IMG/VR virus record: IMGVR_UViG_3300036770_008729
Location: 1 to 64,000 of that record
Strand: one strand, 5' to 3'
DNA: 64,000 nt
Shown here: positions 5,070-25,271 of the stretch, one piece after another
Position numbering within the stretch: position 1 is the stretch's first letter
How the letters are laid out: the number at the start of each line of letters is the position of its first letter
Translations under genes and position numbers: made by a program
The notes under the pieces: generated by a model
Database searches by the model: none
What the model saw: the letters and a program-made list of their open reading frames with translations, nothing else
Told to the model about the DNA's origin: nothing

Positions 5070-5453
5070 TTAAAAGCTAATTTTATAATTTACTCCAACT
5101 TCTTTGGTTTCTGGATTAAGATTTAAATTCAAACCCTTAATAAATTCTGGACTAATAACAATTGTTTTATCAGGTAAAAATTTTATGAAATCAGCTACAA
5201 ATTTTTTTGGTTCTAAAATATTATTTCCTAACATATTTACTAAAACTTGCTTGTTCTGAACTCCAGTTTTTTTGATTTGAATATTATATTTGTTACAAGT
5301 GTCTATTATATTCATTGCCGGTTTATTTTTAATTATTTCCTGAGCATCTAATTTAGAAATACCCAATCCTAAAAAAGTCGCTAAAGAAAAAGCAACATTT
5401 CTTAGTTGACTTTCATTCAATTTAAAATCATCAAAACCTAACAAATATTCCAT
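5070..5453 (-). CDS. Hypothetical protein with N-terminal tag-like sequence (MEYLLGFDDFKLNES)
   Basis: 127-aa ORF; TAATATATA at 5461-5469. Confidence 0.7.
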   Translation of the reverse strand: MEYLLGFDDFKLNESQLRNVAFSLATFLGLGISKLDAQEIIKNKPAMNIIDTCNKYNIQIKKTGVQNKQVLVNMLGNNILEPKKFVADFIKFLPDKTIVISPEFIKGLNLNLNPETKEVGVNYKISF

Positions 5454-5559
5454 ATTAGCATATATATTAATAATTTGTTAACAACTTCATCATAAACAAA
5501 AATCTTTTACATGAAACAATTTGTATATTTGTAATTAAAATAAAAAAAACAAAAACAAT

Positions 5560-5937
5560 ATGAAAAAAATATCCATAAAAACTACAATTATAGTAAGTGT
5601 AGTATTAGCAGGTCTAATTGTAAGTTACTTAGTAAGTAATAACAATCATGATGTTACATGTGTAAGTAATAATAACAATCATGATGTTACATGTGTAACT
5701 AAAAATGATAATTTTGACATAACAAAAGACGGTGTATATCTGAAGGAATTCTATAAAGATAGTGATGATCCTTTTACAAAGGTAAATAAGGATACTATCC
5801 GAATACTAGATATTCAAGAATCTAAAAGAAATGGTAAATTTTATGTTAAATGGACATTTACTAAATGGAATGATACTACTAGATATATTTCTTCTGAGCT
5901 ATCATATATTGCAGAAAATACTATAAGAATCAAATAG
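5560..5937 (+). CDS. Hypothetical protein with N-terminal membrane anchor
   Basis: Hydrophobic N-terminal helix; TATATTTG at 5524-5531 upstream. Confidence 0.7.
   Translation: MKKISIKTTIIVSVVLAGLIVSYLVSNNNHDVTCVSNNNNHDVTCVTKNDNFDITKDGVYLKEFYKDSDDPFTKVNKDTIRILDIQESKRNGKFYVKWTFTKWNDTTRYISSELSYIAENTIRIK
5632..5698 (+). repeat. In-frame tandem duplication (30/33 nt)
   Basis: gtaagtaat(aat)aacaatcatgatgttacatgt present twice; encodes VSNNN(N)HDVTC x2. Confidence 0.9.
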
Positions 5938-5972
5938 TAATTTTATATATAATCTAAATACAATTTATTACT

Positions 5973-6344
5973 ATGTTAAAGATAGATTGGTATTTAGAAC
6001 AACCATACGACTTTGAATATAAAAATTATATTCTACTCGATTATGTTCAATCAGTAGATAAAAGTTATCAACTGCATCAACTGAGTCCTTATCTTCTTTG
6101 GACTGAAAAGCTTGTTTTGGAATTAAAAGATTTTCAAAAAAAAAGAATTCAATTTCTAAAAAAACTTGAAAAGGATGTTTTATTATATGAGTATGGTAAA
6201 ATTCAGATAGTTAAATCTAAAATTAAAGAGCCGGATTTTATTAAAACTATAACCGAAATAATAGACTTTTCTCAACCTATATTAGAATCAAAAGTTAAAT
6301 TTGGGTATAAATTGTTAAGTAAATATCCACAATTGCTATATTGA
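5973..6344 (+). CDS. Hypothetical protein
   Basis: 123-aa ORF, N-terminus DWYLEQPYDFEYKNYILLDY. Confidence 0.7.
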   Translation: MLKIDWYLEQPYDFEYKNYILLDYVQSVDKSYQLHQLSPYLLWTEKLVLELKDFQKKRIQFLKKLEKDVLLYEYGKIQIVKSKIKEPDFIKTITEIIDFSQPILESKVKFGYKLLSKYPQLLY

Positions 6345-6386
6345 GAAGATGTAGTACAAATATATACATCAAAAAATAATAATAGT

Positions 6387-6566
6387 ATGCCAACTAAAGA
6401 TAAAATGTTTTCTCTGAGACTTCCAGAGGAATTGTTAGAAAATTATAAAAGATTTTGCGATGAAAATTCTTTTAATATTTCTAAAAGGTTAAGAAAATTT
6501 ATGGAAAGAGATATTGAAATTTGGAAAGAAAAAATGATAAAAAAAGATAACAACTCAAATAAATAG
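6387..6566 (+). CDS. Small ribbon-helix-helix (Arc/CopG-like) DNA-binding protein
   Basis: Not in the track; 59 aa MPTKDKMFSLRLPEELLENYKRFCDENSFNISKRLRKFME..., with the RHH pattern of an alternating beta-strand then two helices. Confidence 0.7.
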   Translation: MPTKDKMFSLRLPEELLENYKRFCDENSFNISKRLRKFMERDIEIWKEKMIKKDNNSNK

Positions 6567-6570
6567 TTTA

Positions 6571-7074
6571 TTAATTCTCTTTCCAATCATCTCTATTATT
6601 TAGAAATCTTAAATCATTGGTTGTTATATTGATATTTTTGAAGTGATTAAAAAAATCAACTAATTTTTCAACTGATTCATCTGTGAAAGAAAATATACAA
6701 TCCTTACAATCCTTACAAAATTTAGTTCCGTATGTCATATTCTGGATCACATGAATTTTATTAGGTGGTTCTAAGCTAAATTCCGATACAACAAAATCAC
6801 CTAAAGTTATATCAACATCAAATCTTATACTTTTAGTTGTTGCATCTTGAACAGTGTATAAATCAATTTCAAGAGTATCAGTATATCCCCACTCATTTTC
6901 AGTATTTACATAAGTGATTTGAAACATATCGCTATTTTTCATAATATTACCTCTTTTGAATTTGTGAATTCCATATTCTTGAATAGTAAACTCTTCTGGT
7001 AATATTCTACTCAAATCTATATCATATATCATATTTGATTGAGAATAAGACTCGAATTTTTTTAAATATTTCAT
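6571..7074 (-). CDS. Hypothetical protein with N-terminal tag (MKYLKKFES); paralog of 18695-19471
   Basis: Start moved from 7134 to ATG 7074, with TAATATATA at 7080-7088; shares DIT..F(S)(L/I)EPPNKI and DESV..LV.FFN.F with 18695-19471. Confidence 0.75.
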   Translation of the reverse strand: MKYLKKFESYSQSNMIYDIDLSRILPEEFTIQEYGIHKFKRGNIMKNSDMFQITYVNTENEWGYTDTLEIDLYTVQDATTKSIRFDVDITLGDFVVSEFSLEPPNKIHVIQNMTYGTKFCKDCKDCIFSFTDESVEKLVDFFNHFKNINITTNDLRFLNNRDDWKEN

Positions 7075-7152
7075 ATCTTTATATATTAATTTTCTCTTTA
7101 TTATATTTTTCGTTATTTCGATTGTGTTAAACAAAATTTGACAATTTTTATA

Positions 7153-7161
7153 TAATATATA
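7153..7161 (+). promoter_or_regulatory. Putative late-promoter motif TAATATATA upstream of the T9SS cargo gene
   Basis: Exact 9-mer 88 nt before ATG 7250, followed by a GC-rich structured segment. Confidence 0.4.
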
Positions 7162-7249
7162 GTTTTATATGCTTTATGCTAATTAACTCGACCGGCCCAT
7201 GGTAGATGGGGGTTCCTGAAAAGGTTCTTCAATAGAGTAAAAAATATAT

Positions 7250-10200
7250 TTGATGATGAAATTTTTCAAGTACATATTTTTATCTCTGATAACCTTGTTA
7301 TCTATAAATTCTTTTTCACAAACCGCAATGCCTGCTTCTGGCACTAATGTTGGTGCATCATCGGGTAGTTGGCTAGTTCCTGCCAATGTTTATTCAATAG
7401 AAATTGATGCTTGGGGTGGTGGTGGAGCTGGTGCTGGTAAATCGACCTCAGGGACTGGTGGTTTAGCTGGTGGTGCAGGTGGATCAAGATCTACAACAAC
7501 AATTTCAGTAACACCTGGTCAAATCATATATTTTAGAGTGGCAGCCTCTAGACCCGGAACTACAGGAAATGCAGCAAACGGAAATGATACCTGGGTCAAT
7601 AAGTCATTAAATTCCGCACCTACATCTTCAACCGATGGTGTTGTCGCTAAAGGTGGGGCTAGTGCAGTTGGAACTGCTGCTGGTGTTGGTTCAACAACAG
7701 GATGTATAGGAACATCTAACCAAGGTGGTAGTGGTAGAGTCGGTGGTGTAACTGCTGGTGGTGGAGGTTCTGGTGCCGGTACGAACTTAGATGGTAATGA
7801 TGCCACAGGAACTGCTGGTGCGACCGCTCCTGCTGGTGGTGGTAATGGTGGTAATGGTCACTCATCTGGTGGTGCGGGTTCTGCTGGTTCAATTCCTGGT
7901 GGAGGAGGTGGTGGTGCCTATAAAAACAATAACACATCAAGAAGTGGAGGAGCTGGGGCAGCTGGTAGGGTTATACTTACTTATTTAGCTATTCCTAATT
8001 GTGCCTCTCTTAATGCACCATCAAACAATTCAACTGGTATTTCAACAAATCAAGTACTTAGTTGGGCTGCTGTTAGTGGTGCTACAAGTTATGATGTTTA
8101 TTTTGGTACAAGCTCTACTCCGCCTTTTGTTATAAATCAAACAGGAACATCTTATACTCCTACATTATCATATTCAACTCAATACTATTGGAAGGTAGTT
8201 GCTAAAAACTCAGCCGGTGATGCCTTAAGTTGTTCTACTTGGAACTTTACAACAAAAGATCCTGGTTGTCTTTCAGCAACCTACGGTCAGTATCCTAGTA
8301 CTACATATACACCATCTTGTATGGGAACCGTTGAGAATATAACTACTACTGGATATGCTAGTGAGTATTCGGTTGTTAGTTTACAAAATGGTGAAACTTA
8401 TACATTTTCTTCATCTAATTCTACTGATTTTATAACTATTTCTAATTCTGCTGGAACGACTGTTTTAGCATATGGCACAACACCTGTTTCGTGGACTTCT
8501 AATTTAACTGGAAATGTTAGATTTTATACACACACAAATGAGGCTTGTGGTTCTTCTACTACTGGTCGAACTAGAAGAGTTCAGTGTTCGATACCACCAC
8601 TTTGTACTTCTCTAATCTCACCTTCTGATGGATCTACTGGTCAGAGTATTGGTACTCAACTTTCTTGGCAATCTGTTTCTAATGCGAATAGTTATGATGT
8701 ATATTTTGGAACATCATCAAATCCACCTTTTATACAGAATCAGACAGGTACAACTTACTCCCCTTCATTGTCATATAATACTACCTACTACTGGAAAATA
8801 GTTCCTAAGAGTTCTGTTGGTAGTGCTACTGGTTGCTCAGTATGGTCTTTCACCACTGGTGGTCCTGGTTGCTTAAATTCTACTTATGGACAATATCCAA
8901 CATCGGTGTATAATCCAGGATGTACTGGAACACCCGAGAATATAACAACTGCTGGCTATGCTGGTGAATATTCTATGGTAACTTTAATTAGTAATGTTAA
9001 TTATACATTCTCGTCTTCTGTTGCTACTGATTTTATAACAATTAGTGATGAGTTAGGAACAACAATACTGGCTTATGGTACAGGTAGTGTTTCTTTTACT
9101 TGTCTTACTGATGGTAATTACAGATTTTATACTCACACTGATAATGCCTGTGGTTCTTCGAGTACTAGTAGAGTTAGAAGAATCCAATGTTCTACTCCAC
9201 CCCCACCGGCTAATGATTTAATTGCAAATGCACAAGATGTTGGTTTATGTGGTGGATCGTTTAATGGCAATACTAAGTTTGCTACAAATTCCGGAGATGG
9301 ACCAAGTTGTTGGACGGCTCCTTCTGAAAATTGGACAGCACCTGGTGTTTGGTACACGGTGGTTGGAAATGGTCAGAACATAACAGCATCTCTTTGTGGT
9401 TCTAATTATGATACCAAGCTATTTATTTATACAGGAACACCTGGTAGTTTGACTTGTCTTACTTACAATGATGATTTTTGCTCAACTCAATCACAAGTTA
9501 CGTTTTCATCGACATTAAATACTACTTATTATATGTTGGTTACTGGATATGGATCTGCAAAAGGTGCTTTCACATTTTCAGTAAGTTTGGATCCATCGGT
9601 TCCTGTTATATCAACAAATCCAACAAACAGCACAATTTGTCCAGGTTCAAGTTGGACATTTTCAGTTATCGCCTCTGGTAATCAAGGCCCTCTTTCTTAT
9701 CAATGGTATTTAGATGGAAATGTAATTAGTGGTGCTACTCAATCTACATATGATGCTTCGACTGCTGGTACCTACTATGTTATTGTTTCTAATAGTTGTG
9801 GTGCTACAACTCAATCAAGTAATGCTACATTAAGTTTATTTACTTTACCTACTATTACTGTTAATTCTCCTGAAATTTGTTTTGGTAATTCTACTACAAT
9901 TATTGCTTCTGGTGGCACTTCTTATAGTTGGTCAACCGGTGCCACTACCAGTTCAATATCTGTTAGTCCTATTTCAACAACTAATTATATTGTAACTGGA
10001 ACTGATGTGAATGGATGTCAGAATACAGCAACTTCAACAGTAACTGTAAATCCTAATCCATTAGTATCTCTAAACACACTATCAAGTACTATTTGTTCTG
10101 GTGGATCCGGTACTAATAACATTACAGCTACTCCGTCATCCGGTAATCCAACATATAATTATCAGTGGCAGTATTTTAATGGTACTTCTTGGGTTAATAC

Positions 10201-13200: not shown

Positions 13201-14227
13201 AGGTTCAAATGTAATTAGTGTTAGTTTTCAATCCGGTTTTTCTGGAGGTGTGATAAGTGTGTTAGTTTCTGGTGGTTGTGCTAGTCCAATAACTGTGTCT
13301 AAAACTTTATCACTTGGATATCCTTCAATGACAATTCAGGGCACAAGATGTGTTGAAAATGGTTGGTCTTATAACTACTCGGTTTCTTTTCCTAGTATGG
13401 CTTATTATTATAATGTTCAGAGTTATACTTGGGTTCCACCTGCAAATGCAGTTGTTAGTAGTGGTCAGGGAACTCAAAGTGCGACTATAACTTATCCTTC
13501 AAACTTTGAGTCCAATTGTACAAACAATATGTGTGACTCAATTAAAGTATATGTTCAGTTTCCTTGTGGTGTGAAATTGGTAAAAATGAAAATTGGTATG
13601 ACAACTTATGCTGCTAGCTCAATTATTGGTCCACCTTCAACTTGTGGTCCAGATACTGTTATGTTGAATGTTGCGGTTCCTACACCAGTAAGAGCAACTG
13701 GTTATATTTGGGGTTATCCAAATGGTGCTCAATTTTTAAACCTTAATGGTGGTGGGTCTTCAAATGATACTATTTTTGCAAAGATTAATTCTACTTACTT
13801 TGGTGGTAGTTTTAGTGTTATGAGTTTTAATCAATGTGGTTCAACTCCAATGAGATATTTTACCTTACCAAAGGTTTGTCCTACTGCTATTATTATAAAT
13901 AATGATCCTGAGATATCTACTGATATAATAACTACGATGAATGATATTCTTTCGGATCCAGAATATTTGGAAAATCAAAAAAGACCTTTGGATTTTATAA
14001 CTTATCCAAATCCTGGTCAAAACATAATAAATCTTAGAATATTTAAAGGAAATTCACCTTACTATTTGATTCAAATAACTAATTTGATTGGTCAAAATGT
14101 TTATGCCAAATTACATGAGGCTGAAGATGTTATTGATATTTCTAAATTTGAAGAAGGAGTATTCTTTATTTCAATTCAGGATAATGAAGGAAATAAATTA
14201 ACTAAACAATTAGTTATTGAGAGATAA
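7250..14227 (+). CDS. Large T9SS type A sorting-domain surface protein (Gly-rich domain, FN3-like repeats, Ig, SprB repeats, PKD-like domains)
   Basis: Signal peptide ending SFS-Q; two FN3-like units (LSW..VS.A.SYDVYFGT...YYWK.V); SprB repeats (VxCNGGxxGxIxLTVSGGTPxYTYxWSNG); PKD-like units; C-terminal YPNP...N.IGQ....IDIS....G.FFI.I......T..LVIE. Confidence 0.9.
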   Translation: MMMKFFKYIFLSLITLLSINSFSQTAMPASGTNVGASSGSWLVPANVYSIEIDAWGGGGAGAGKSTSGTGGLAGGAGGSRSTTTISVTPGQIIYFRVAASRPGTTGNAANGNDTWVNKSLNSAPTSSTDGVVAKGGASAVGTAAGVGSTTGCIGTSNQGGSGRVGGVTAGGGGSGAGTNLDGNDATGTAGATAPAGGGNGGNGHSSGGAGSAGSIPGGGGGGAYKNNNTSRSGGAGAAGRVILTYLAIPNCASLNAPSNNSTGISTNQVLSWAAVSGATSYDVYFGTSSTPPFVINQTGTSYTPTLSYSTQYYWKVVAKNSAGDALSCSTWNFTTKDPGCLSATYGQYPSTTYTPSCMGTVENITTTGYASEYSVVSLQNGETYTFSSSNSTDFITISNSAGTTVLAYGTTPVSWTSNLTGNVRFYTHTNEACGSSTTGRTRRVQCSIPPLCTSLISPSDGSTGQSIGTQLSWQSVSNANSYDVYFGTSSNPPFIQNQTGTTYSPSLSYNTTYYWKIVPKSSVGSATGCSVWSFTTGGPGCLNSTYGQYPTSVYNPGCTGTPENITTAGYAGEYSMVTLISNVNYTFSSSVATDFITISDELGTTILAYGTGSVSFTCLTDGNYRFYTHTDNACGSSSTSRVRRIQCSTPPPPANDLIANAQDVGLCGGSFNGNTKFATNSGDGPSCWTAPSENWTAPGVWYTVVGNGQNITASLCGSNYDTKLFIYTGTPGSLTCLTYNDDFCSTQSQVTFSSTLNTTYYMLVTGYGSAKGAFTFSVSLDPSVPVISTNPTNSTICPGSSWTFSVIASGNQGPLSYQWYLDGNVISGATQSTYDASTAGTYYVIVSNSCGATTQSSNATLSLFTLPTITVNSPEICFGNSTTIIASGGTSYSWSTGATTSSISVSPISTTNYIVTGTDVNGCQNTATSTVTVNPNPLVSLNTLSSTICSGGSGTNNITATPSSGNPTYNYQWQYFNGTSWVNTGTNVNTLNATPSATREYRVVINDSKSCLVTSSSHTVTVVPDPINPTLNTKSPNQNDICVGTGVSATFNSGSDGVGCQDIFQYSINSGISWSSYNPGNTISTSGLTQGTTVQIRGRRGNCSTGIGCSNNAYDVLVQWTIVTPPILSTNVSDVSCNGGNNGNINLTVSGSVGPFSFNWSGPNGFTSTLEDLSNVEAGSYTVVVSTPSGCQSTTSITVSQPSNMVLTIVGQNVACNGGSSGNIDLTVSGGTPTYTYSWSNGETTEDISNLSPGSYTVNVSDANGCIATSTVSISEPSLPISLSNTNQNVLCNGGSDGSIDLNVSGGTPGYTYSWSNGQTSEDISGLIAGTYSVLVTDFNGCTSTLTTTILQPSALSSSVAVYNVNCYGQNTGSINLTVSGGTPGYTYLWSNGQTSAYATALGAGTYSVLITDVNGCQSTNNATITQPTLLVASHTKVNLTCYNSNDGSITVTASGGTPPYTYGWTNGMTGSTISNLPAGNYTSYVSDSKGCTKLQTINVSQPSVLSSSVNSPTISTCQTTPVVITASVIGGTAPYTYLWSTGATTNTISVLPTQTTSYTIQITDSKGCVNNNIATVTVSQTVGLPIVGSVSGPTQAYNYMLNGSSATYSVNPVPGATSYIWYIPNNGVWVIGNNTSNILTVQFQSYFTGGDFYVAALDGCSISYSDTLNVSILDNPIIAGSSCGIPSGSIKTYYVSNSIPGLTYNWTPPYGSVILSGQGNDTVQIKYSSYFQSQSQLYVNTSTIYGVFTGEKEILRNASSPTAILGPQSICADGTTIYEYYVDSVATATSYIWGVPNGVSIVSGQSNDTIQVRFSTSYIGGNFSVMSVNQCGSSPMRYGTVSNSNQQFYPGTISGPGDLCPYLGTTVTYSVPLSAGYTYTWLAPSGMTILSGQGTNIITLQVSNSFTSGTLSVKLNEGCGDSPYSTRSLSTQQTNISVSQIQGLTNPCSIVGTGQTTTYSITPISGVNYNWSVPVNATIVSGQGSNVISVSFQSGFSGGVISVLVSGGCASPITVSKTLSLGYPSMTIQGTRCVENGWSYNYSVSFPSMAYYYNVQSYTWVPPANAVVSSGQGTQSATITYPSNFESNCTNNMCDSIKVYVQFPCGVKLVKMKIGMTTYAASSIIGPPSTCGPDTVMLNVAVPTPVRATGYIWGYPNGAQFLNLNGGGSSNDTIFAKINSTYFGGSFSVMSFNQCGSTPMRYFTLPKVCPTAIIINNDPEISTDIITTMNDILSDPEYLENQKRPLDFITYPNPGQNIINLRIFKGNSPYYLIQITNLIGQNVYAKLHEAEDVIDISKFEEGVFFISIQDNEGNKLTKQLVIER

Positions 14228-14855
14228 ACTTTTTGTCAATTATAGCAAATGAGAAATGTTGTTTTGGTGGTAAAAAAACTATAGTTTTATCTAAAATACC
14301 TTCAAGTTTTTTTCTAATCTTATCCATGACAGATATGACATTGTCATACAAAGTTACATTCAGGTTTGTTTTTTGAACAAAAACAAAACAAGGAATCCAC
14401 CCTGAATTCAATAATTCTGGAATTTCTCTACTTTCTTCTTTTATTTTATCCTTAAAGTAACTAGAAATTGTAGGATTTTCAAACACACGAACCCAATCCA
14501 ATTTTTGATGTTTCATGCTCAATCCAACAAGAGCAGCATTAATAGATTTGAGGTACTTTAAGTCACCAATATTATTATTATTAAAATAGTCTTCAGTTCT
14601 TAAAAATTTTGTACTTAAAGTCTCACCGTTACATACTAAGTTTTGAAATCCAACTCCTGGTTTTAATAGGTAAGGACTTAAATAACCAATTGAAAATTCA
14701 GGAAATAAATCTTCTAAATCAACCAAACAATCAAAAGTATCTTCTATATTTAAATCATCAAAAGCACTTTCGATTATTTCAATACCGGATTCACAATCTT
14801 GAAGTTCAAGCTGTTCAATAAAATTATATCTTTCAAAAGTTTTGATGTATTTCAT
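14214..14855 (-). CDS. Hypothetical protein with N-terminal tag (MKYIKTFERY)
   Basis: 213-aa ORF starting 3 nt after the neck-like gene. Confidence 0.75.
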   Translation of the reverse strand: MKYIKTFERYNFIEQLELQDCESGIEIIESAFDDLNIEDTFDCLVDLEDLFPEFSIGYLSPYLLKPGVGFQNLVCNGETLSTKFLRTEDYFNNNNIGDLKYLKSINAALVGLSMKHQKLDWVRVFENPTISSYFKDKIKEESREIPELLNSGWIPCFVFVQKTNLNVTLYDNVISVMDKIRKKLEGILDKTIVFLPPKQHFSFAIIDKKFISQ

Positions 14856-14857
14856 AG

Positions 14858-17095
14858 TTATTCATTATATGGGAAATTCGGTAAATAAAGACGAGTAGTT
14901 GCATTGTCTGCAAAAACCAAGTATTTACTATCATCTCTAATAATATATTGATTACAAATCTTAGTGTGTTCAGATTCTGGTATAACATCTAAGAATACTC
15001 TTATGTTAGTTGCTTTCATATCAGAACCAAGTAACTCTGGATTTACTCCTTCCATCTCAAAGGTTATAGGAGTTATATCTTGTTCATTTTTATAAACTTG
15101 TTTCAATATCGTGTTTGTTAGTGTGGCTGCCTCTTCCTCCAGCTCTATATTTCTCTTATAGATGTATTGTTGCATTTTTCTCTGTCTTTGTTCTATATTA
15201 AGCACATAACAATACCATACTTCTTCATTAAGAGCATTTGTTTCATTTACAGGAACACCTGATAAATCAAAGTGGTAAGTTTCTGTGTTAAGAGTTACTA
15301 TAATAGTATCGTTTAGTAATTCAGCACTCCATCCTTTTGAGTTATCTTCATCATAATAATTAAAGAATGAATAGACTTCATCCATCACATAATTGTTAAG
15401 ATTGAACCAAATTTGAAAGCCAATATTATCTGAGACATCCAATTTTGGATCTAAGTTTTTATATCTTACCGCTGTTGTTCCCTGTTCAACGGTTGATAGA
15501 TCATAGTTAGCTTTAGCGATTATTGTAGATGAGTTTTCAATCAATTCCTTATTAATTTCTGCCATTATTTCTTGTCTAATAGGTTCCCTTGTAAGTGGTT
15601 TGAATTGGTCTTTATTAGCTATAGATGCTTTATCTTGAACATTTTCAACACCAAACAATTCATCAATAGTGCTATTCTTAGTGAGTTGGTCAAGTTTTGT
15701 CTGAATTTGTTGATTACCAGCAATAACATTTGCTTTCTGAGTGTATTTTTTCAATACAAGTTTATAATACACTGCTGAGTTATTGAAATTTCTAAATTGT
15801 TGAGCATGGTCAACTTGAAACATTCTATTCAAATTACAGAAATAAAGAAAATCCTCTTTTGATGGTCTTCTTTGTGGTCCAAATATCTCTTTGAATTGTT
15901 TTTTTGTAATGTGAACATTCATATTTTCAAATAAACTCAAATCAAATTGATTCATTACTATCTGACTATCTGGAAAGTTGTTACCATCTACTGATACTTT
16001 CATATCACCTTGACAGACTACATTGTATAATTGATATTCATGTAGAGTGTGGTCTTGGCCTTTTTTATCAGCGTCTGTGCAAAAATAAATTACTTGGTGA
16101 CCAAATACTTGCTCAGCATCAGAACTCATTTTATTTAAAAGATTAAATGCTGTATTTTGTTGATATGGATTGTAAAGTTTAGCCTTTTCATCAGCTGTCA
16201 TTTGAGGCAAACTATTAGGTGTCTCACATTGTCCACCTGAATTAGAAATCCCACCATTGTTAAGTGCTGGTATAAAATTTCCATTTGCATCGTAATATCC
16301 GGTCAAATTAGATTGACAACATTCTCTAATCCCATAAAGATTTGTTTTGAAATAGTCTTTACTAACATTTTGAAAATCACCTATTAGATTAATATCTTGA
16401 ATACTGACATTTGCATCAGAGTTGTTCTCAACTGAATATTCAATTTGAAAAAATCTAACTGGATTAATAGGAGTAGTGCTTATATTTTCTTTTGTAAATG
16501 GTTCCCAACTAGACCAGGTTCTAGAATTATCTTGTGAATATCTATATTTTATAGATACTCCAGCTGGTATTCCAGTTGATGAGATTATCTCTATATCATC
16601 TACCTTGAATACTTTAAATATATATGGAGCTTTGAAAATTTTACTTTGACCAGAAGATAAAACTATTGTACTTTCATCTGTGACAACATCTCTTTCTAGA
16701 TCGCCATTTAATTTATATTCTAACAGTCTTATATTTCCTACAGTTGAGTTTCCTCCTCTTGTCCATCTGATATCTATATTAAGTTTGTCTTTTGGATCTA
16801 CTACAGGAAAATTATCTATATTTCTTTTTAGGTCTAACCATTCTGTCCATTGAATTCCATTTCTTGATATCCTATATTCTTGTGATAGGAATCTATTATC
16901 GGTCATTCCTAATGTATCATATAAAAATAAATTAAATAATTTAACATTTTGTAAATCTGTAATACTTATTGTATATTGGTCTCCTATATTTGAAAATATT
17001 GGAGCAAAGTCGACAGATGATGTCGCCGATGTGATACTAAACTTGTATGATATAGAAATAGTACCATTTAGGTTATCAGTTGCAATATTAGGCAT
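14858..17095 (-). CDS. Virion structural protein containing a T4 gp14-like neck domain
   Basis: Central segment EQVFGHQVIYF...DHTLHEY...FDLSLFENMNVHITKKQF...RPSKEDFLYF..LNRMFQV resembles gp14-type neck proteins by pattern; TAATATATA at 17100-17108. Confidence 0.55.
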   Translation of the reverse strand: MPNIATDNLNGTISISYKFSITSATSSVDFAPIFSNIGDQYTISITDLQNVKLFNLFLYDTLGMTDNRFLSQEYRISRNGIQWTEWLDLKRNIDNFPVVDPKDKLNIDIRWTRGGNSTVGNIRLLEYKLNGDLERDVVTDESTIVLSSGQSKIFKAPYIFKVFKVDDIEIISSTGIPAGVSIKYRYSQDNSRTWSSWEPFTKENISTTPINPVRFFQIEYSVENNSDANVSIQDINLIGDFQNVSKDYFKTNLYGIRECCQSNLTGYYDANGNFIPALNNGGISNSGGQCETPNSLPQMTADEKAKLYNPYQQNTAFNLLNKMSSDAEQVFGHQVIYFCTDADKKGQDHTLHEYQLYNVVCQGDMKVSVDGNNFPDSQIVMNQFDLSLFENMNVHITKKQFKEIFGPQRRPSKEDFLYFCNLNRMFQVDHAQQFRNFNNSAVYYKLVLKKYTQKANVIAGNQQIQTKLDQLTKNSTIDELFGVENVQDKASIANKDQFKPLTREPIRQEIMAEINKELIENSSTIIAKANYDLSTVEQGTTAVRYKNLDPKLDVSDNIGFQIWFNLNNYVMDEVYSFFNYYDEDNSKGWSAELLNDTIIVTLNTETYHFDLSGVPVNETNALNEEVWYCYVLNIEQRQRKMQQYIYKRNIELEEEAATLTNTILKQVYKNEQDITPITFEMEGVNPELLGSDMKATNIRVFLDVIPESEHTKICNQYIIRDDSKYLVFADNATTRLYLPNFPYNE

Positions 17096-17143
17096 GACTT
17101 ATATATTAAATTGATAATTCTATTTAAATTTCTTCTAAATTAT

Positions 17144-17174: not shown

Positions 17175-17204
17175 TATGTATAATAAAGTAAATAACAAAA
17201 AGTT

Positions 17205-18479: not shown

Positions 18480-18483
18480 TAAT

Positions 18484-18639
18484 ATGGAAATAGGAAAATT
18501 AAAATTGACAGAAGCTCTTAAATTACTTAAACCTATTGCTCATAGTTATGGGTTGAATTTGAGTAATTCAAAAGATTTCAAAACAGCTAGAATTATTTTA
18601 GCAAATCTTTATTGTCACGATATTCAATATGAACACTAA
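18484..18639 (+). CDS. Small hypothetical protein (51 aa)
   Basis: Not in the track; MEIGKLKLTEALKLLKPIAHSYGLNL..., fills the gap between two + strand genes. Confidence 0.55.
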   Translation: MEIGKLKLTEALKLLKPIAHSYGLNLSNSKDFKTARIILANLYCHDIQYEH

Positions 18640-18694
18640 TATTACAGAATTGGGTATATACAATTTGTAAAATTTACAAATTAATATATACCCT

Positions 18695-19471
18695 ATGAAG
18701 TATTTGAGAACTTTTATAGAAAATGCCGTTCCAGTAATTGGTGGAAACAAAGAATATAGAATGCAAAGTTTACCTCACAAAGGTGATCCAATAGCTTCTG
18801 ATGGTAAGATTTCTATTTTACAACAAGATTGGTTTGAAAAACTATTGCCAGATACATTAAAAGTGTCTTGTGATCCAAGATTATTTAAATTGAATTTTGA
18901 CCAATCATTAACTCCGGTTGAAAAAAAAGACTTTATTTTTGAAAAAAATGATTGTGCAATTAATAAAAGTATAATTCAGTTTAATTATTGGATGGTTCCT
19001 GATCATAATCCTGGTGAGGAATTAGAAGATGGTGAACCTTCTTGTATTGAATTTGATATATGTTCAGTTAAAACCTTAGAAGGTATAAAATTAATAGTGG
19101 ATATCACACATGGTGAAGACATTACTTTTCAGTTCTCAATTGAACCTCCTAATAAAATAAATGTTGGACATTATACCGGTGTTGGTTCTCTTTATGATAA
19201 TAAAACACATTTCGGATTCAAAGATGAATCAGTTAAGGATCTAGTTAATTTTTTTAATGCCTTCGATCATGGAATTAAATTGACCCAGAAAGATTTAGCA
19301 TTTTTAGATGAACATAGAGATAGTTATAAACATGATGTATTTAATAAAAAACATAACTATACTGATGATTCTGACTTGCTTAAATTTGGAAATTCCATGA
19401 AAGACAATGAGCCAAGTTTGAAAAATGTTCAATCATTCAGTAACTTTAATCCATCTACCATCAGTAAGTAA
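18695..19471 (+). CDS. Hypothetical protein with N-terminal tag (MKYLRTFIEN); paralog of 6571-7074
   Basis: 258 aa; TAATATATA at 18682-18690, 4 nt before the ATG. Confidence 0.75.
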   Translation: MKYLRTFIENAVPVIGGNKEYRMQSLPHKGDPIASDGKISILQQDWFEKLLPDTLKVSCDPRLFKLNFDQSLTPVEKKDFIFEKNDCAINKSIIQFNYWMVPDHNPGEELEDGEPSCIEFDICSVKTLEGIKLIVDITHGEDITFQFSIEPPNKINVGHYTGVGSLYDNKTHFGFKDESVKDLVNFFNAFDHGIKLTQKDLAFLDEHRDSYKHDVFNKKHNYTDDSDLLKFGNSMKDNEPSLKNVQSFSNFNPSTISK

Positions 19472-19819: not shown

Positions 19820-19903
19820 TACTATTTCATATATAAATTATTCATTTAGTTTAATTTTATAATTCAAAAAAATTTATTATATTTGTCATTAATATATAAT
19901 ATA

Positions 19904-20359
19904 ATGTCAACTCAACTCTATAAAATAGTTTTTAATAAAAGTTCATTTGAATTAAATGATGATTACGAAAGACTTTCTGAATACGAGAAAGAAATAATAT
20001 CATCTATGCCAGTTGATGCTTTTTTTGACTATGATTGTGATGATGATTATACTTGTTTTTTAATAACTAGTATAGAAACAGTAAAATCATATGTATCTAT
20101 TCTAAATAATAATTTAATTAAACATAAAGTCCATAACATTTCAAATAAAGTTATTAACAACGAAATCAATTTAGAAAAAGAGATTAAAGATTCAATTGAG
20201 CCAACTTATAAAATAAAATTCAATATATTTATTGATGGTGTCAATGAATGGATTTTAGAACACTTAGATATAGACACGGTTTTAGATAGAATAAACCAAG
20301 TTGGTGGTATGAATAATTTAAGACAAGTAGAAAAGGAATTTCTTAAAAACTACAAATAA
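19904..20359 (+). CDS. Hypothetical protein
   Basis: Track start 19883; ATG 19904 preferred because TAATATATA lies at 19890-19898. Confidence 0.65.
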   Translation: MSTQLYKIVFNKSSFELNDDYERLSEYEKEIISSMPVDAFFDYDCDDDYTCFLITSIETVKSYVSILNNNLIKHKVHNISNKVINNEINLEKEIKDSIEPTYKIKFNIFIDGVNEWILEHLDIDTVLDRINQVGGMNNLRQVEKEFLKNYK

Positions 20360-20514
20360 TGAAGAGAATATTACAACCTTTATTTCAAAATTATGCAGAT
20401 TTTCTAATCTCAAGATTGGAAAAAACTGACACACAAGCAGAATTTGAAGCACTGTTTTCACAGGCTTTGTATTTAGATTGGATAGCTTATACTTTTGGCG
20501 TCGAACTAAAATGA
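20359..20514 (+). CDS. Small hypothetical protein (51 aa)
   Basis: Not in the track; MKRILQPLFQNYADFLISRLE..., overlapping the stop and start of both neighbours. Confidence 0.6.
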   Translation: MKRILQPLFQNYADFLISRLEKTDTQAEFEALFSQALYLDWIAYTFGVELK

Positions 20515-20822
20515 GGAAAATGAATTTTATAACCAGACATTTAATTGGTAGAATAGGAACTTTGATTGAAGAAAATCAAAAGTCACTTAATCATTCAAGT
20601 TTTCTTTATTTAGATAAACCCACAAAGACAAGAACCAAGTTTATTAATAGAGTTAATAAGTTTAACTATTACTATCAGAATGAAATCTTACCTCAAAGCT
20701 TTTATTTCTTAGAGCCTATACAGCTAATGGAAATATATGATAGTCTTAAAACCAATAACTTTTTTATCTATAAGACCATAAAAGGCAAAGACTATAAAAC
20801 CAGAATCAAAAAACGTGATTAG
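20511..20822 (+). CDS. Hypothetical protein
   Basis: Track start 20478; ATG 20511 gives an ATGA overlap with the upstream small ORF. Confidence 0.65.
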   Translation: MRKMNFITRHLIGRIGTLIEENQKSLNHSSFLYLDKPTKTRTKFINRVNKFNYYYQNEILPQSFYFLEPIQLMEIYDSLKTNNFFIYKTIKGKDYKTRIKKRD

Positions 20823-21537
20823 TTTATTAGGATATGATTTTAAATATCAACTTTATGTTGATTATGCTTCTTCAAATAGTTGTGAGACAAGTGGTTGTAT
20901 TGAAGAAGGCATTTGTCGCTGCACTGAAATTCATGACTGTCAAGTAACTGATGTCAAATTTAAAGATATATCAGATATCGTTTATAATTCATACTTTGAT
21001 AAAAGTAAATCTTCAAAAAGAAATATCAAAATTAACGAACTACTTTATGGTATCAATGAAGAAATAGACCGATATACAGTTGATAGAATTCTTAGAATTA
21101 ATAAAATCTGGCTTGATAAAAATTGGATAGTTCAAATTAATAATGGTTATTATGGTCAGGAAATAGATGTTGTGATATTAACATCTGAAATGGCTGATAA
21201 AATATCAAAAGAATTAGATACTGCTTTTGATATTTTAGATTTAAATAAAAGAGTAGAATTTCTTTTAGAGTTGGAGTATGGAAAACTTTTACCTCAATTA
21301 GAAAACTGTAGTTGGAAATTAATTAAATTAAAAAAAGATGATATTATTTTCCCCTCAAAATCTCATTTAGAGTTAGTTGGAAAAAAAGAATTAATTCACT
21401 ATTCTGCTCCTAAATATAATTCTATAAGAGCTGTTGTTACCAAAGATGGTAATTACTGGAAATTAGTAGATGGTTATCACAGATTATCTGCTATTAGTTT
21501 AGGTGATTTCTGGGTTTTAGCTGGAGAAAAAAGTTAA
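20815..21537 (+). CDS. Hypothetical protein with C-terminal ParB/Srx-like motif
   Basis: YWKLVDGYHRLSA (DGxHR) near the C-terminus; Cys cluster near the N-terminus. Confidence 0.55.
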   Translation: MISLLGYDFKYQLYVDYASSNSCETSGCIEEGICRCTEIHDCQVTDVKFKDISDIVYNSYFDKSKSSKRNIKINELLYGINEEIDRYTVDRILRINKIWLDKNWIVQINNGYYGQEIDVVILTSEMADKISKELDTAFDILDLNKRVEFLLELEYGKLLPQLENCSWKLIKLKKDDIIFPSKSHLELVGKKELIHYSAPKYNSIRAVVTKDGNYWKLVDGYHRLSAISLGDFWVLAGEKS

Positions 21538-23432
21538 TTTGGTAAAAATTCACCACTTTCTACCTGTTCTAATCTTTTAACTAATTTATTCAAAGATTTT
21601 TTAGCAGTTTCTTTCCCTTTTTCAATCATCTTTTTGTCAAATTTCAAAGGTAACTCTCCTGATGTATCATCATTTAATACTCTATTATAATGATTGATTT
21701 TACTACTAAGTCTTTTTTCTAATGTTTCAAGTAAATCCTCTATTTCCTTATGATAGTCAAAAAGATCCGTAACTCTTTTTTCAGATGTATCAACTTCCCA
21801 TCCGAATACAATTGCATCTTCTTCTTTCAGATATTCTACTCCTTCTAAGTTAACAGGGTTAGGATTATTTGATGCATCTAAAACCTTAAATGTTTCAATC
21901 TTAAACTTCTTCAAAATCCATTCTCCTTTATAGTCCTTCTCTAAAAGAGAATCATGGATGTATTGATAATCTGACCAATCTGAAAATCTATTTGATAGAA
22001 TTTCAGCCCAAGGTCTATCAAGAATTTTTGAACCCATATATAAAACTTCATCATCATCTTCGTGATACCAACTTGCTTCATCATGCGGTTCAATACTTCC
22101 ATCAGAATAAATATTATCAATAACTTTTTGAGCATCTTGCTCTAAGATTCTATCACCATAAGCCTCGGAATAAACTGAATCATCTTCATGTAAATAATCA
22201 TCATACCATTCACTATGAACTATAACATCACAATCCTCTGGGTAGTATCCTCTGTTTCTTCTTGAACCTCTGGTAACTTCAACACATCTATTATCCCATA
22301 GATAAGTATTTTCATAGTCAGACCAAACTGCTCTATCTTCTGGAATGTTTTCTCCGTGATAGTCAGACCAAACTCCACTACTAGTTTGACTATAACCACC
22401 ATCAGTATCGTCTAATAGATAGTGACCGTCATTATCTTCTTCATCATCGTTGTGTAATGTTCCATTATCAATGTCAAATCTTCTGAATGTGTCCATATAT
22501 GGATATCTTTTATATCCGTAAGTGGTTCCATTTTTAGGAAGTTGTATTTTCATATACACACCAATAGATTCTCCTTTATATGTCATAGATTGAAAAGAGT
22601 GGTGATTGTTATTGGTTTTATATCCCCAACCTTTATCATCTGCAAATTTTCTAAATTTAGCCACGTCGGATTCTTTGATGGTGTATTGTCTATCCATAAA
22701 CCATTCAGGTCCTTCGTATACTCTACCATTCTTTTTATATGAGGTGATTTTCCAGATTAGTGCTCTCCCGATTAGTTTACCATCTTCTAACAGAACAACC
22801 ATTTTACATAAATCAGGATTCTTAGAATACATTTCAAATACCGAAGCTGGTTTTTCTCTCATACAAGAATTTCCTAAATTACCACTAACTTCTTTGTAGT
22901 TATTGTAATCATACCAGAATGGAATTTGATCACCTTCAACTATTTCAAACTTTTCACCTGTTTGTTCAATAGAGGATTTGAACAAGTTAACAAAATCTTC
23001 TCTTTCTTTATCTGAATATTTACCTGGAAATAGTTTATTTACAAATCTTCCTATTGCTAATGGATTCCTAGATTTTAGGAAAAGGCCGGTTCCTCTATCA
23101 GATCCCTTTTTGTCGAGTGACCATAGCTCATCAGCTAAATCTACATCTGGATTTGTATCTACATAATCCATAGTTGGATATTTATCCATAATGATTTTTT
23201 TAGCATTTCTCATTGTTGAAAAACTAATATATCCTTCTTTATCTAAGTCAATAAATGTAATATCTGGTTTGATATCTTCCGCTTCAATTGAAATGATGTC
23301 TTTTGCAATAGCATTTTCTTTTGACAATTTAACTAGAATTCTTCTAACATCAGGAGAATAATAAAAGATAGACTCATTAATTAATCTTTCCAAAATTAGA
23401 TTTTCATTAAAATCATGATATTTATATAACAT
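21534..23432 (-). CDS. Large hypothetical phage protein with tag-like N-terminus, NSCMR / IGRALIW / FMDRQY motifs and an acidic Trp/Tyr repeat region
   Basis: 632-aa ORF; TAATATATA at 23438-23446. Confidence 0.7.
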   Translation of the reverse strand: MLYKYHDFNENLILERLINESIFYYSPDVRRILVKLSKENAIAKDIISIEAEDIKPDITFIDLDKEGYISFSTMRNAKKIIMDKYPTMDYVDTNPDVDLADELWSLDKKGSDRGTGLFLKSRNPLAIGRFVNKLFPGKYSDKEREDFVNLFKSSIEQTGEKFEIVEGDQIPFWYDYNNYKEVSGNLGNSCMREKPASVFEMYSKNPDLCKMVVLLEDGKLIGRALIWKITSYKKNGRVYEGPEWFMDRQYTIKESDVAKFRKFADDKGWGYKTNNNHHSFQSMTYKGESIGVYMKIQLPKNGTTYGYKRYPYMDTFRRFDIDNGTLHNDDEEDNDGHYLLDDTDGGYSQTSSGVWSDYHGENIPEDRAVWSDYENTYLWDNRCVEVTRGSRRNRGYYPEDCDVIVHSEWYDDYLHEDDSVYSEAYGDRILEQDAQKVIDNIYSDGSIEPHDEASWYHEDDDEVLYMGSKILDRPWAEILSNRFSDWSDYQYIHDSLLEKDYKGEWILKKFKIETFKVLDASNNPNPVNLEGVEYLKEEDAIVFGWEVDTSEKRVTDLFDYHKEIEDLLETLEKRLSSKINHYNRVLNDDTSGELPLKFDKKMIEKGKETAKKSLNKLVKRLEQVESGEFLPN

Positions 23433-23448
23433 AAATGTATATATTAAT

Positions 23449-25237: not shown

Positions 25238-25271
25238 TCAATTATAGTTGTTTTTTTTAATATATACAACT

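Follow-up and report, generated by a model that had tools for sequence, protein, structure and literature searches.

A short peptide that directs unrelated proteins into a phage head is the capsid targeting sequence (CTS) of bacteriophage T4, an N-terminal peptide (MKTYQEFIAE; PMC8442874) conserved on three highly basic internal proteins, among them the counter-defence protein IPI*. [quoted passage not shown] A related situation is found in the giant phages phiKZ, 201phi2-1 and SPN3US, in which many head-internal proteins are targeted and then trimmed after Glu by a gp21-related protease, and in which paralogues such as SPN3US gp53 and gp54 keep identical N-termini. However, those propeptides are mostly longer than 100 residues, are cleaved at A/S/G-x-E, do not constitute one shared short motif, involve about 8-20 proteins, and belong to a different lineage (chimalliviruses of Proteobacteria). 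Outside phages, the encapsulation peptides of bacterial microcompartments and the cargo-loading peptides of encapsulins are short amphipathic helices, joined by a flexible linker to unrelated enzymes, that direct them into a protein shell, which in encapsulins has the HK97 fold of phage capsids. Nevertheless, these belong to cellular organelles, those of encapsulins are C-terminal, and they are neither removed by proteolysis nor related in sequence to the tag described here. Finally, the mobile promoter/stem-loop cassettes (PeSL) of T4-type phages also place a short conserved element at the 5' end of many small orphan genes in plastic genome regions, possibly helping gene shuffling, but they are conserved as DNA.

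The stretch analysed here (the window) comprises the first 64,000 nucleotides of IMG/VR record IMGVR_UViG_3300036770_008729, a 281-kb fragment of a huge Bacteroidota-type phage that is collinear with part of the 635-kb uncultured phage LR745206. The initial annotation had proposed that five dispersed genes beside virion genes share an N-terminal tag, that four of them carry TAATATATA 4-7 nt before the ATG, that no such tag is found on the glycan-cluster, ClpC, MgtC, CYTH or peptidase genes, and that the window holds at least 14 copies. This observation was confirmed, as all five ORFs exist with the proposed N-termini. Three of them are strong members of a single motif, scored on a 12-column log-odds matrix on which internal-Met windows average -20 bits. 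The first, 6571..7074 (-), encodes 167 residues (MKYLKKFESY...) from the ATG at 7074 rather than from the upstream TTG, carries TAATATATA 5 nt upstream, and scores 27.7 bits (15.0 on a core matrix); of its 33 database relatives, all but a few (some probably truncated) keep the tag, followed by a hypervariable linker and then the conserved body. The second, 14214..14855 (-), encodes 213 residues (MKYIKTFERY...; 25.9 bits), lacks TAATATATA and starts 2 nt after the stop of the untagged neck-like virion gene 14858..17095 (-), which carries the motif itself 4 nt upstream. The neck-like protein is 65% identical to LR745206 and 23% to the protein annotated as neck protein in Tenacibaculum phage PTm1. 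The third, 18695..19471 (+), encodes 258 residues (MKYLRTFIEN...; 22.1 bits), carries TAATATATA 4 nt upstream, and is a paralogue of 6571-7074, with which it clusters once the tag is removed.

The other two genes are only degenerate or short-variant members. The 127-residue product of 5070..5453 (-), MEYLLGFDDFKLNES, scores merely 2.5 bits: it keeps Y3, L4, F7, F10 and LNES, as well as the aromatic spacing, but has lost both lysines; it has no homologue in LR745206, and TAATATATA lies 7 nt upstream. The 632-residue product of 21534..23432 (-), MLYKYHDFNEN...LINES, with TAATATATA 5 nt upstream, scores below background on the same matrix, although its LR745206 orthologue and its paralogues start MISRYNKFREN, MIKKYLDFIKES and MIKRYQEYITES, the short variant of the same tag. 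The proposed negative control also held, since no ORF between 23484 and 55211 (glycan cluster, ClpC, MgtC, CYTH), nor the M28 peptidase, scores as tagged. In total, the window contains 12 robust tags plus the two degenerate ones, i.e. 14. Nine of the robust tags open consecutive genes at 56275..61631 on the minus strand: 56275-57033, 57033-57914, 57901-58191 (GTG start, pterin-4a-carbinolamine dehydratase; Pfam Pterin_4a, 2e-22), 58188-58631, 58628-58879, 58927-59460 (2H phosphoesterase, Acb1-like, with the short tag MRIKSYIQFIKES; 2_5_RNA_ligase2 9e-13, Acb1 28.7 bits against a cut-off of 27), 59457-59996, 60013-60933 and 60930-61631. Every member scores 13.5-32.3 bits on one or other of the two matrices.

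Across the whole contig, a peptide M-K-[YH]-[LI]-K-x-[FY]-x-x-[FY]-E opens about 71 of 402 genes (about 18%), far beyond chance. Of 399 N-termini, 46 match M[KR][YHWF][LI][KR], against 5 of 1405 internal Met, while composition predicts 0.13 (Fisher p = 7e-26). Of 4848 ATG triplets in all frames, 67 score 10 bits or more, and almost all of these start an ORF of at least 78 aa; only 2-3 internal copies exist, one of them in a fused gene. In addition, an unsupervised BLOSUM comparison found 66 of 387 N-termini with three or more similar partners, against 0 of 320 control peptides. The interpretation put forward in the initial annotation, a shared N-terminal tag on otherwise different genes that co-occurs with TAATATATA and is absent from the metabolic and glycan genes, is supported, and both tests that it had proposed came out in its favour. 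Profile scores of N-termini, which would have counted against the tag had they merged with those of other MK-starting ORFs, are bimodal and clearly separated from that background. As for association with the DNA motif, an ATATATA core within 30 nt upstream occurs at 38 of 71 tagged genes against 74 of 331 untagged genes (odds ratio 4.0, p = 4e-7), and the stricter setting (AATATATA within 12 nt) gave an odds ratio of 4.4 (p = 5e-5). However, the tag is not special to the neighbourhood of virion genes, as it is contig-wide and mostly found in tandem arrays, and the DNA motif is enriched on tagged genes but not specific to them.

The promoter-like element TAATATATA occurs 11 times in the window, against 5.1 +/- 2.2 in shuffled sequences, and by their coordinates against the ORF map all 11 copies are intergenic and point at a gene start. 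These copies precede the fibre-like gene 786-3905 (3927..3935, -), 5070-5453 (5461..5469, -), 6571-7074 (7080..7088, -), the 2325-aa type IX secretion protein gene 7250-14227 (7153..7161, +), the neck-like gene (17100..17108, -), 18695-19471 (18682..18690, +), the untagged gene 19904-20359 (19890..19898, +), 21534-23432 (23438..23446, -), the untagged gene 25272-26123 (25258..25266, +), 58628-58879 inside the array, at a distance of 27 nt (58907..58915, -), and 60930-61631, the first gene of the array, at 6 nt (61638..61646, -).

Several lines of evidence indicate that the tag is a module and not part of a fold. After its removal, 61 of 66 tagged proteins are BLAST singletons. An alignment of the tagged proteins yields a mean column identity of 6%, with only the first 11 columns giving a consensus, so homology does not extend beyond the N-terminus as it would in a single paralogous family. 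At least five distinct folds carry it (Pterin_4a, GATase, AAA_33 kinase, 2H phosphoesterase and PolyA_pol/CCA). In a 47-member 2H family, F9 and E12 of the tag are invariant, like the two HxT motifs, and yet AlphaFold gives residues 1-15 a pLDDT below 50 next to a body near 90. The linker that follows is hypervariable, and long and short tag variants replace each other within one family. Moreover, the gene occupying the position of 14214-14855 in LR745206 also carries the tag (MKYLKQFELF), whereas its body gives no BLAST match at E<=10; thus, as in the T4 internal-protein locus, the gene behind the neck gene keeps the tag in two phages while its body has been replaced. Selection acts on the peptide rather than on the DNA: synonymous codon usage in the tag equals that of the genome for K, Y, H, I, F, E and N (Leu shows more TTA), 56 tags use 47 distinct 15-mers and 56 distinct 33-mers, third positions vary freely, and LR745206 shows the same synonymous scatter. 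Regarding its distribution, relatives carry the tag on 11-19% of genes, the 735-kb phage LR756501 uses a shifted variant, and PTm1 has no multi-gene tag.

Known export signals do not account for these features. A Sec, Tat or lipoprotein signal peptide would show a hydrophobic region of 10-20 residues after a basic one, but positions 8-12 of the tag are rich in Glu, only 4 of 55 tagged proteins have any membrane-like segment, and true signal peptides on the contig (MKKLLTLLL...) score below 4 bits. Likewise, the type IX sorting domain Por_Secre_tail is found only on the untagged 2325-aa protein, and no tagged protein matched it in Pfam.

In contrast, the T4 CTS scores 14.6 bits on a core-anchored matrix built from 133 tags of three genomes, where the median true tag scores 15.0, and this score is reached by 0 of 296 PTm1 N-termini, 2 of 1213 untagged N-termini and 1 of 7171 internal-Met windows. 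Both peptides span about 10-20 residues, start Met-Lys, have aromatic residues three apart and a Glu at the end, and are shared by otherwise unrelated, fast-evolving proteins, although the usual form here has an MKYL or MKHL prefix and often F-E rather than I-x-E at the end. LR745206, the closest complete relative, which is 62-85% identical in many proteins, encodes Portal_T4 (2.7e-57), a Gp23 capsid protein (1.8e-26) and a protease-scaffold protein that is 34% identical to the annotated 'prohead core scaffolding protein and protease' of PTm1, but whose match to Peptidase_S77 lies below the Pfam cut-off (17.5 against 27 bits). As the contig studied here, which is a fragment, contains no portal, protease or capsid gene, the presence of a T4-type prohead in this particular phage is left undecided, and the same type of head module in PTm1 shows that the module does not by itself predict the tag. 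An [LIVMF]-x-E occurs within the first 20-odd residues of 81% of tagged proteins against 40-45% of untagged ones, [LIV]NE at positions 10-21 is about 5-fold enriched over the proteome-wide rate, and the capsid-protein propeptides of LR745206 and PTm1 contain VLEN, INEN and INES, the same endings as the long tags. Still, many tags end in T-F-E, F-E-S or F-N-E rather than in a clean I/L-x-E, and these data do not settle whether the tag terminates at a prohead-protease site.

A cargo that is to be cleaved only once should avoid internal protease sites, and this independent prediction was fulfilled. The bodies of tagged proteins (residue 26 onward) are depleted in [LIV]-x-E compared with untagged proteins (observed/expected 0.97 against 1.12, z = -4.4, label permutation p = 0.0004). 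Glu is the only outlier among the 20 possible residues at that position, I, L and V are the three most depleted residues two positions upstream of it, only the one-residue spacing is affected, and D, K and Q controls are flat. The depletion is modest, falls to z = -1.8 per genome with a stricter tag definition and is absent in LR756501, but it was replicated in 252 tagged against 1002 untagged ORFs from IMG/VR loci (0.98 against 1.14, z = -3.7).

The best explanation, with moderate confidence, is that the tag is a T4-type CTS: a short, flexible, amphipathic N-terminal propeptide with the core [KR]-x-[FY]-x-x-[FY]-(I/L/V-x)-E, usually prefixed MKYL or MKHL. In this model, the tag would dock the newly made protein onto the scaffolding core of the assembling prohead, a gp21-like prohead protease cutting after Glu in I/L-x-E motifs would then clip it off, and the body would stay inside the head and enter the host with the DNA. 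The analysis itself demonstrates the motif and its statistics, selection on the peptide, the unrelated bodies, the flexibility, conservation and clade distribution of the tag, its resemblance to the T4 CTS, the T4-type head module of the nearest complete relative and the avoidance of [ILV]-x-E; binding to the prohead core, cleavage, packaging and injection are, in contrast, inferences. No virion proteomics, cleavage data or cultured member of the tagged clade exist, and neither removal of the tag during head maturation nor its capacity to package a foreign protein was assayed. It must also be considered that 16-19% of all genes would be head cargo, far more than in any studied phage, that the set includes enzymes one would expect in the cytoplasm (CCA-adding enzyme, pterin dehydratase, amidotransferase), and that tagged proteins are acidic on average (median pI 5.5), unlike the T4 internal proteins. 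On the other hand, the promoter-like element shared with the neck-like and fibre-like genes is in keeping with the model.

Among the alternatives, the least improbable, though still unlikely, is that the tag docks every tagged protein onto something other than the capsid, such as a common hub protein, a chaperone or a phage-built intracellular assembly (a replication factory or compartment). A flexible, conserved, amphipathic helix on unrelated soluble proteins is what any short linear docking motif looks like, cytoplasmic-type enzymes carry it, and the phage encodes its own DnaK, DnaJ and a ClpC-like unfoldase lacking its usual N-domain. However, this reading predicts neither the resemblance to the T4 CTS nor the Glu-specific avoidance of [ILV]-x-E, no candidate receptor was identified, and ClpC does not track the tag, since LR756500 has tags but no ClpC, whereas LR756501 has ClpC without the MKYLK form, carrying the shifted variant. 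The same lack of co-variation speaks against the still less likely possibility of a cytoplasmic processing or turnover signal, either a degron for an AAA+ protease or an inhibitory propeptide removed by a Glu-specific protease to time the activity of host-takeover proteins. Met-basic-hydrophobic N-termini do resemble one class of ClpX recognition signals, the avoidance of [ILV]-x-E would also fit exposure to a Glu-specific protease outside the capsid, and many tagged genes are small orphan genes in arrays, like early host-takeover genes. Yet, no ClpP was found on the contig, the only known Glu-specific I/L-x-E protease in this virus group is the prohead protease, active inside proheads, and a degron on one gene in six, kept as strictly as catalytic residues, has no precedent.

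It is also very unlikely that the tag is a functionless remnant of one exploded paralogue family that multiplied by tandem duplication. Tagged genes do cluster (49 of 71 have a tagged neighbour, against 22.5 expected, with arrays of up to nine), and a few arrays contain detectable paralogues. However, a fold common to all bodies is already contradicted by the Pfam results, tag positions are invariant across a family whose bodies have diverged to about 50% identity, variants swap within a family, and the linker behind the tag is the least conserved part, while neutral remnants would decay first, not last. The remaining notion, that what is conserved is DNA or RNA (a translation-initiation enhancer or downstream box for leaderless mRNAs, or a recombination cassette of promoter plus first codons that shuffles genes, like the PeSLs), could draw on the position of many tags 4-7 nt behind an AT-rich element and on the swapping of genes behind the neck gene, but it is largely refuted by the codon data described above, and nearly half of tagged genes (33 of 71) lack the DNA motif.

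The best reading is that of a T4-type capsid-targeting propeptide expanded to genome scale. While three internal proteins carry the conserved CTS in T4, in this lineage of huge Bacteroidota phages the same device would have been put on about 70 genes of this 281-kb fragment and on 100-170 genes of a complete relative, many of them orphan genes in tandem arrays and others encoding enzymes, including metabolic and RNA-repair types, such as an Acb1-like 2H phosphoesterase, a CCA-adding enzyme and a kinase, with likely counter-defence proteins among the cargo. The tag thus probably sends dozens of unrelated proteins into the virus head for delivery into the host.

The window covers bases 1-64000 of a single 281,114-bp contig with 30% G+C, which IMG/VR files as a virus record labeled "provirus", with a CheckV completeness of 94%. 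It encodes a gp32-type single-strand DNA-binding protein and an M28 peptidase, which were the only ones recognized among the ten window proteins first tested in PHROG and Pfam scans. It also encodes a neck-like protein that is 62-65% identical to proteins of the uncultured 635-kb and 642-kb phages LR745206 and LR756502 and 23% identical to the annotated neck protein of Tenacibaculum phage PTm1, as well as MgtC, CYTH, a ClpC-like AAA+ protein, a patatin and a 2325-aa SprB/PKD protein with a type IX secretion sorting domain. The type IX signal, together with the hosts of the cultured relatives (Tenacibaculum, Chryseobacterium and Flavobacterium), points to a Bacteroidota host. Gene-by-gene comparison showed that the contig is collinear with LR745206 positions 354-575 kb and then 1-90 kb, that is, with only about 310 kb of that genome, and that it lacks the part holding the portal, the prohead protease and the major capsid protein. 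In keeping with this, Pfam searches of the contig for Peptidase_S77, Gp23 and ClpP returned nothing, and neither did tblastn with the portal, protease and capsid proteins of PTm1. The contig is therefore a fragment of a genome that is probably about 600 kb, and the completeness estimate is misleading for this clade. The same sequence (window 56000-62000) was found in subsurface metagenome runs, which contained all of the sampled words, and in freshwater and lake runs from several studies, which contained 11-77% of them, so the phage or close relatives are widespread in groundwater and fresh water. However, all of these were DNA runs and no metatranscriptome contained the sequence.

Other features of the contig deserve description. 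The 2325-aa protein (window 7250-14227, plus strand) carries a signal peptide, a Gly-rich domain, SprB repeats, PKD-like domains and the type IX C-terminal sorting domain, and two large paralogues are found at contig positions 66270-70763 and 117360-120977; a phage-encoded protein built to be exported by the host's type IX system is unusual. An ORF running off the start of the window (1-768, minus strand) contains long GTSGSS/GTSGSN collagen-like repeats and lies next to a 1039-aa fibre-like protein with no Pfam match (786-3905, minus strand), both being probably tail or head fibres. Sequence searches of the Protein Data Bank with two putative structural proteins gave nothing useful. The ClpC-type double AAA+ protein (window 27826-29994, plus strand) has a UVR motif and a VGF loop, as read from the sequence, but no Clp_N adaptor-binding domain. 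The run at window 30098-50146 (plus strand) comprises about 24 co-directional genes that, judged from their translations only, read like glycosyltransferase, sugar-nucleotide and methyltransferase genes and show strong positive GC skew. The contig regions 75819-76895, 82408-84273 and 88500-93200 encode proteins whose N-termini read like DnaJ and DnaK, for which no domain search was run, and a Pfam-confirmed PrkA/DUF444 (YeaH)/SpoVR triad, 74-86% identical to LR745206.

The initial annotation had described the same N-terminal tag on five dispersed ORFs, and this observation held, since all five ORFs and their N-termini were found as described. A 12-column log-odds matrix was built from 46 N-termini matching M[KR][YHWF][LI][KR], a strict pattern for which composition predicts 0.13 matches. 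Whether such scores could be told apart from background had been set beforehand as the test of the tag, and the scores of N-termini proved to be bimodal: 57 of 399 crude genes reached 12 bits or more, against 2 of 1270 internal-Met windows. Scanning every ATG, GTG and TTG on both strands yielded 67 ATG hits of 10 bits or more among 4848 ATG triplets, and almost all of them start an ORF of at least 78 aa. An unsupervised test, in which residues 2-12 were compared pairwise by BLOSUM62 score, gave the same picture, with 66 of 387 N-termini having at least three similar partners, against none of 320 control peptides. With a second, core-anchored matrix that also catches a shorter variant, 71 of 402 genes (18%) carry the tag. 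Twelve robust members lie in the window, namely 6571-7074, 14214-14855, 18695-19471 and nine consecutive genes at 56275-61631. In contrast, two of the five originally named genes are marginal: 5070-5453 is a decayed copy scoring 2.5 bits, while 21534-23432 belongs to a family whose other members start MIKKYLDFIKES or MIKRYQEYITES, the short variant. The absence of the tag from the glycan cluster, ClpC, MgtC, CYTH and the peptidase, which had been proposed as an internal negative control, was confirmed, as none of them scored as tagged. An RNA ligase 1 homologue (contig 80772-82040) appeared tag-like at first sight, but it does not score as tagged. A single 436-aa ORF (contig 242296-243606, minus strand) has a weak tag at residue 1, a P-loop kinase domain and a perfect second tag (MKYLKLFESFVN) at residue 260, and looks like two neighboring tagged genes fused by loss of a stop codon, or like an internal start.

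The co-occurrence of the tag with an upstream DNA motif, also named in advance as something to be tested, was examined next. The motif TAATATATA occurs 11 times in the window, against 5.1 +/- 2.2 in shuffles, and, by their coordinates against the ORF map, all 11 copies are intergenic and point at a gene start. Contig-wide, its AATATATA core sits at two sharply preferred distances from the ATG, 4-7 nt (45 genes) and 17-28 nt (37 genes). An ATATATA core within 30 nt upstream was found at 38 of 71 tagged genes and at 74 of 331 untagged genes (odds ratio 4.0, p = 4e-7). The interpretation of the initial annotation was thus supported on this point too, although the motif also precedes the neck-like gene, the fibre-like gene 786-3905 and other untagged genes. 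It is not found internally in the glycan run, none of whose genes is tagged either, so that run looks like a single long operon. The motif behaves like a promoter of one expression class, shared by many tagged genes and some virion genes, and the 4-7 nt spacing suggests leaderless or nearly leaderless mRNAs if it is a -10-like promoter element; transcript starts and timing were not examined. Several members of a second, smaller N-terminal family also lie directly behind the promoter-like motif. This family consists of six paralogues of unidentified function (contig 125007, 232593, 238923, 275551, 276202 and 276824; also 207164), and those whose N-termini were read start MPKR or MAKR (I/L)(F/V/L)L....

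Inside the tag, synonymous codon usage for K, Y, H, I, F, E and N equals that of the genome (for example, AAA/AAG is 0.80/0.20 against 0.78/0.22), although Leu shows more TTA than the genome. The 56 best tags use 47 different 15-mers and 56 different 33-mers, third codon positions vary freely, and the same synonymous scatter is seen in LR745206. This indicated that the peptide, and not the DNA, is selected, and largely removes RNA-level and recombination-cassette explanations.

The tag also behaves as a module. After deletion of the first 15 residues, 61 of 66 tagged proteins have no BLAST partner on the contig at E below 1e-4, and an alignment of 66 sequences shows a consensus only in its first 11 columns. 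Most tagged proteins are orphans, and PHROG and Pfam scans of ten conserved ones gave no function. However, the recognizable ones have unrelated folds: pterin-4a-carbinolamine dehydratase (57901-58191), class I glutamine amidotransferase, an AAA_33/polynucleotide-kinase-like protein, a 2H phosphoesterase that passes the Pfam threshold for Acb1 (anti-CBASS) (58927-59460, minus strand) and a PolyA_pol/CCA-adding enzyme. The hydrophobic moment of tag residues 2-12 peaks at 110-120 degrees per residue, indicating an amphipathic helix rather than a strand, positions 12-16 form a polar linker, and tagged proteins are soluble and rather acidic. The 2H phosphoesterase, a likely cyclic-nucleotide or RNA-end phosphodiesterase carried by many huge phages, belongs to a family with 169 database hits at E<=0.001, some on contigs of up to 656 kb. 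In a 47-member alignment of this family, whose bodies have diverged to about 50% identity, F9 and E12 of the tag are invariant, as are the two catalytic HxT motifs, whereas M1, K4 and Y6 are nearly invariant. AlphaFold2 nevertheless gives residues 1-15 a pLDDT below 50, next to a body near 90 with a predicted 2H-phosphoesterase fold. Among 120 of the 169 relatives, nearly all start M[KI][IV]K.Y[IL]QF[IV][KN]ES, and two carry the long form MKHLKSYKLFE or MKYLKKYKLFE instead. In the family of 6571-7074 the tag is conserved, the next six residues or so are hypervariable, with insertions and deletions, and then the conserved body begins. Such strong conservation of a segment that does not pack on its own protein argues for an intermolecular function.

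As for its distribution, LR745206 (635 kb) presented 59 matches to a back-translated MK[YH][LI]K pattern, against 1 for the reversed control, and has 99-113 tagged genes by matrix, or 173 of 910 by the unsupervised test, while LR756500 (462 kb) presented 24 matches against 1. LR756501 (735 kb) lacks that exact pattern, but 62 of 525 N-termini in its first 400 kb form similarity clusters; about 50 of these carry a shifted variant, M[IV]K[KR][FY]xx[FY][IV]NE[SA], and roughly ten are ordinary signal peptides. No tag was found in PTm1 (0 of 296 N-termini), Chryseobacterium phage MA9V-2 gave no pattern match, and the 4 matches against 1 for the control in Sphingomonas phage PAU do not settle whether that phage carries it. 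A scan of IMG/VR returned at least 119 stretches, many with arrays of MKYIKTFE-type genes, and 98 of the 119 contain homologues of proteins of this contig or LR745206, so they are mostly fragments of the same broad clade. A wide search with an 86-aa tagged protein, intended to catch unrelated tag bearers, yielded only two close homologues, the tag alone being too short for database-wide significance. Orthologous pairs between this contig and LR745206 usually both keep the tag, and domains also recombine behind it. The gene directly behind the neck gene carries the tag in both phages, although the two bodies share no detectable similarity. On the contig, 49 of 71 tagged genes have a tagged neighbor, against 22.5 expected. 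The idea that tagged genes turn over faster than others was not supported, since 20 of 54 tagged genes have LR745206 homologues, against 144 of 335 untagged ones (p = 0.46).

The common core of all variants is [KR]-x-[FY]-x-x-[FY]-(I/L/V-x)-E, which is the pattern of the T4 capsid targeting sequence (CTS) MKTYQEFIAE. That peptide of about 10 residues sends the internal proteins IPI-III into the prohead core and is then cut off by the gp21 protease (PMC8442874; PMC5694885; PMC9958956). When scored on a matrix built only from tags of the three huge phages, the T4 peptide reached 14.6 bits, around the median of genuine tags, a level attained by 0 of 296 PTm1 N-termini, 2 of 1213 untagged N-termini and 1 of 7171 internal-Met windows. 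The lineage appears to have the matching machinery: LR745206 encodes a T4-type portal, a Gp23-family capsid protein and a protease-scaffold protein related to the one annotated in PTm1, although the Peptidase_S77 score of the latter LR745206 protein is below threshold. The head module of LR745206 lies at 190-203 kb, with the gp21-like protease-scaffold gene at 198546-200669. The window holds no candidate receptor for the tag, and no complex was modeled. T4-family prohead proteases cut after Glu, and gp21 cuts in I/L-x-E. Most tags contain such a site, the long tags end in [ILV]-N-E-[SN], and the capsid-protein propeptides of LR745206 and PTm1 contain VLEN, INEN and INES, but many tags end in T-F-E or F-N-E instead.

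An independent test was derived from the consideration that, if tagged proteins share the prohead with an active I/L-x-E protease and must survive it, as do T4 internal proteins, which are cut only once, they should avoid that motif internally. In residues 26 onward, [LIV]-x-E showed an observed/expected ratio of 0.97 in 299 tagged proteins and of 1.12 in 1110 untagged proteins (z = -4.4, label permutation p = 0.0004), while [LIV]-x-D, [LIV]-x-K and [LIV]-x-Q did not differ between the two groups. Glu was the only outlier among all 20 residues at the last position, I, L and V were the three most depleted among all 20 residues at the first position, and only the one-residue gap was affected. 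The effect was replicated in ORFs from the IMG/VR loci (0.98 against 1.14, z = -3.7), and it is present in this contig (0.90 against 1.11) and in LR745206 (0.96 against 1.15), but not in LR756501 (1.09 against 1.07). Moreover, it weakened to z = -1.8 per genome when only the 39-64 best core-matrix tags were used. These results were considered moderate but specific support, and such avoidance constitutes a new kind of computational evidence for exposure to a maturation protease, which could be applied to other phages.

Taken together, the data directly document a genome-scale, peptide-level, modular and strongly conserved N-terminal tag, its resemblance to the T4 CTS, a T4-type head module in the nearest complete relative and motif avoidance of the kind expected for protease-exposed cargo, whereas docking to the prohead core, cleavage, packaging and injection are inferred. 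The capsid-targeting reading was considered more likely than not, with moderate confidence only; against it, there are no proteomic data, the number of tagged genes is very large, cytoplasmic-type enzymes are among them, the cargo is acidic where T4 internal proteins are basic, the protease match is weak and no depletion is seen in one tagged relative. Among the alternatives, a docking peptide for another destination was judged unlikely, although it is the strongest competitor. The ClpC-like unfoldase is unlikely to be the receptor in such a case, because its presence does not follow that of the tag: it is found in LR745206 and LR756501 but is absent from the tag-bearing LR756500. A cytoplasmic processing or turnover signal was deemed quite improbable, a functionless family remnant still more so, and a nucleic-acid element very improbable.

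The principle of a CTS is known from T4, and long propeptides are known from phiKZ-like phages. In contrast, a short, shared CTS-like tag on 11-19% of the genes of huge phages, with lineage-specific variants, was not found in the searchable literature, in which exact-string searches for eight-residue forms of the tag returned nothing and none of the papers mentioning the capsid targeting sequence concerns huge phages. A more far-reaching possibility, which the evidence allows but which is put forward only tentatively, is that huge Bacteroidota phages of this clade load their heads with on the order of a hundred different pre-made proteins by means of a T4-like capsid-targeting propeptide, including an anti-CBASS-type phosphodiesterase, RNA-repair and tRNA-repair enzymes and scores of orphan effectors. 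A large fraction of the "extra" genes of huge phages would then encode an injected proteome, readable directly from sequence by its N-terminal tag. If the tag is a capsid address, it gives a sequence-only way to list the proteins that uncultured huge phages carry into the cell, a list that would comprise 70 to 170 proteins per genome, against a handful in model phages. This would extend the T4 CTS principle, already used to package foreign proteins, to Bacteroidota phages, would point to a large pool of candidate first-minute counter-defence proteins, and would help explain what the many orphan genes, and perhaps the very large capsids, of huge phages are for.
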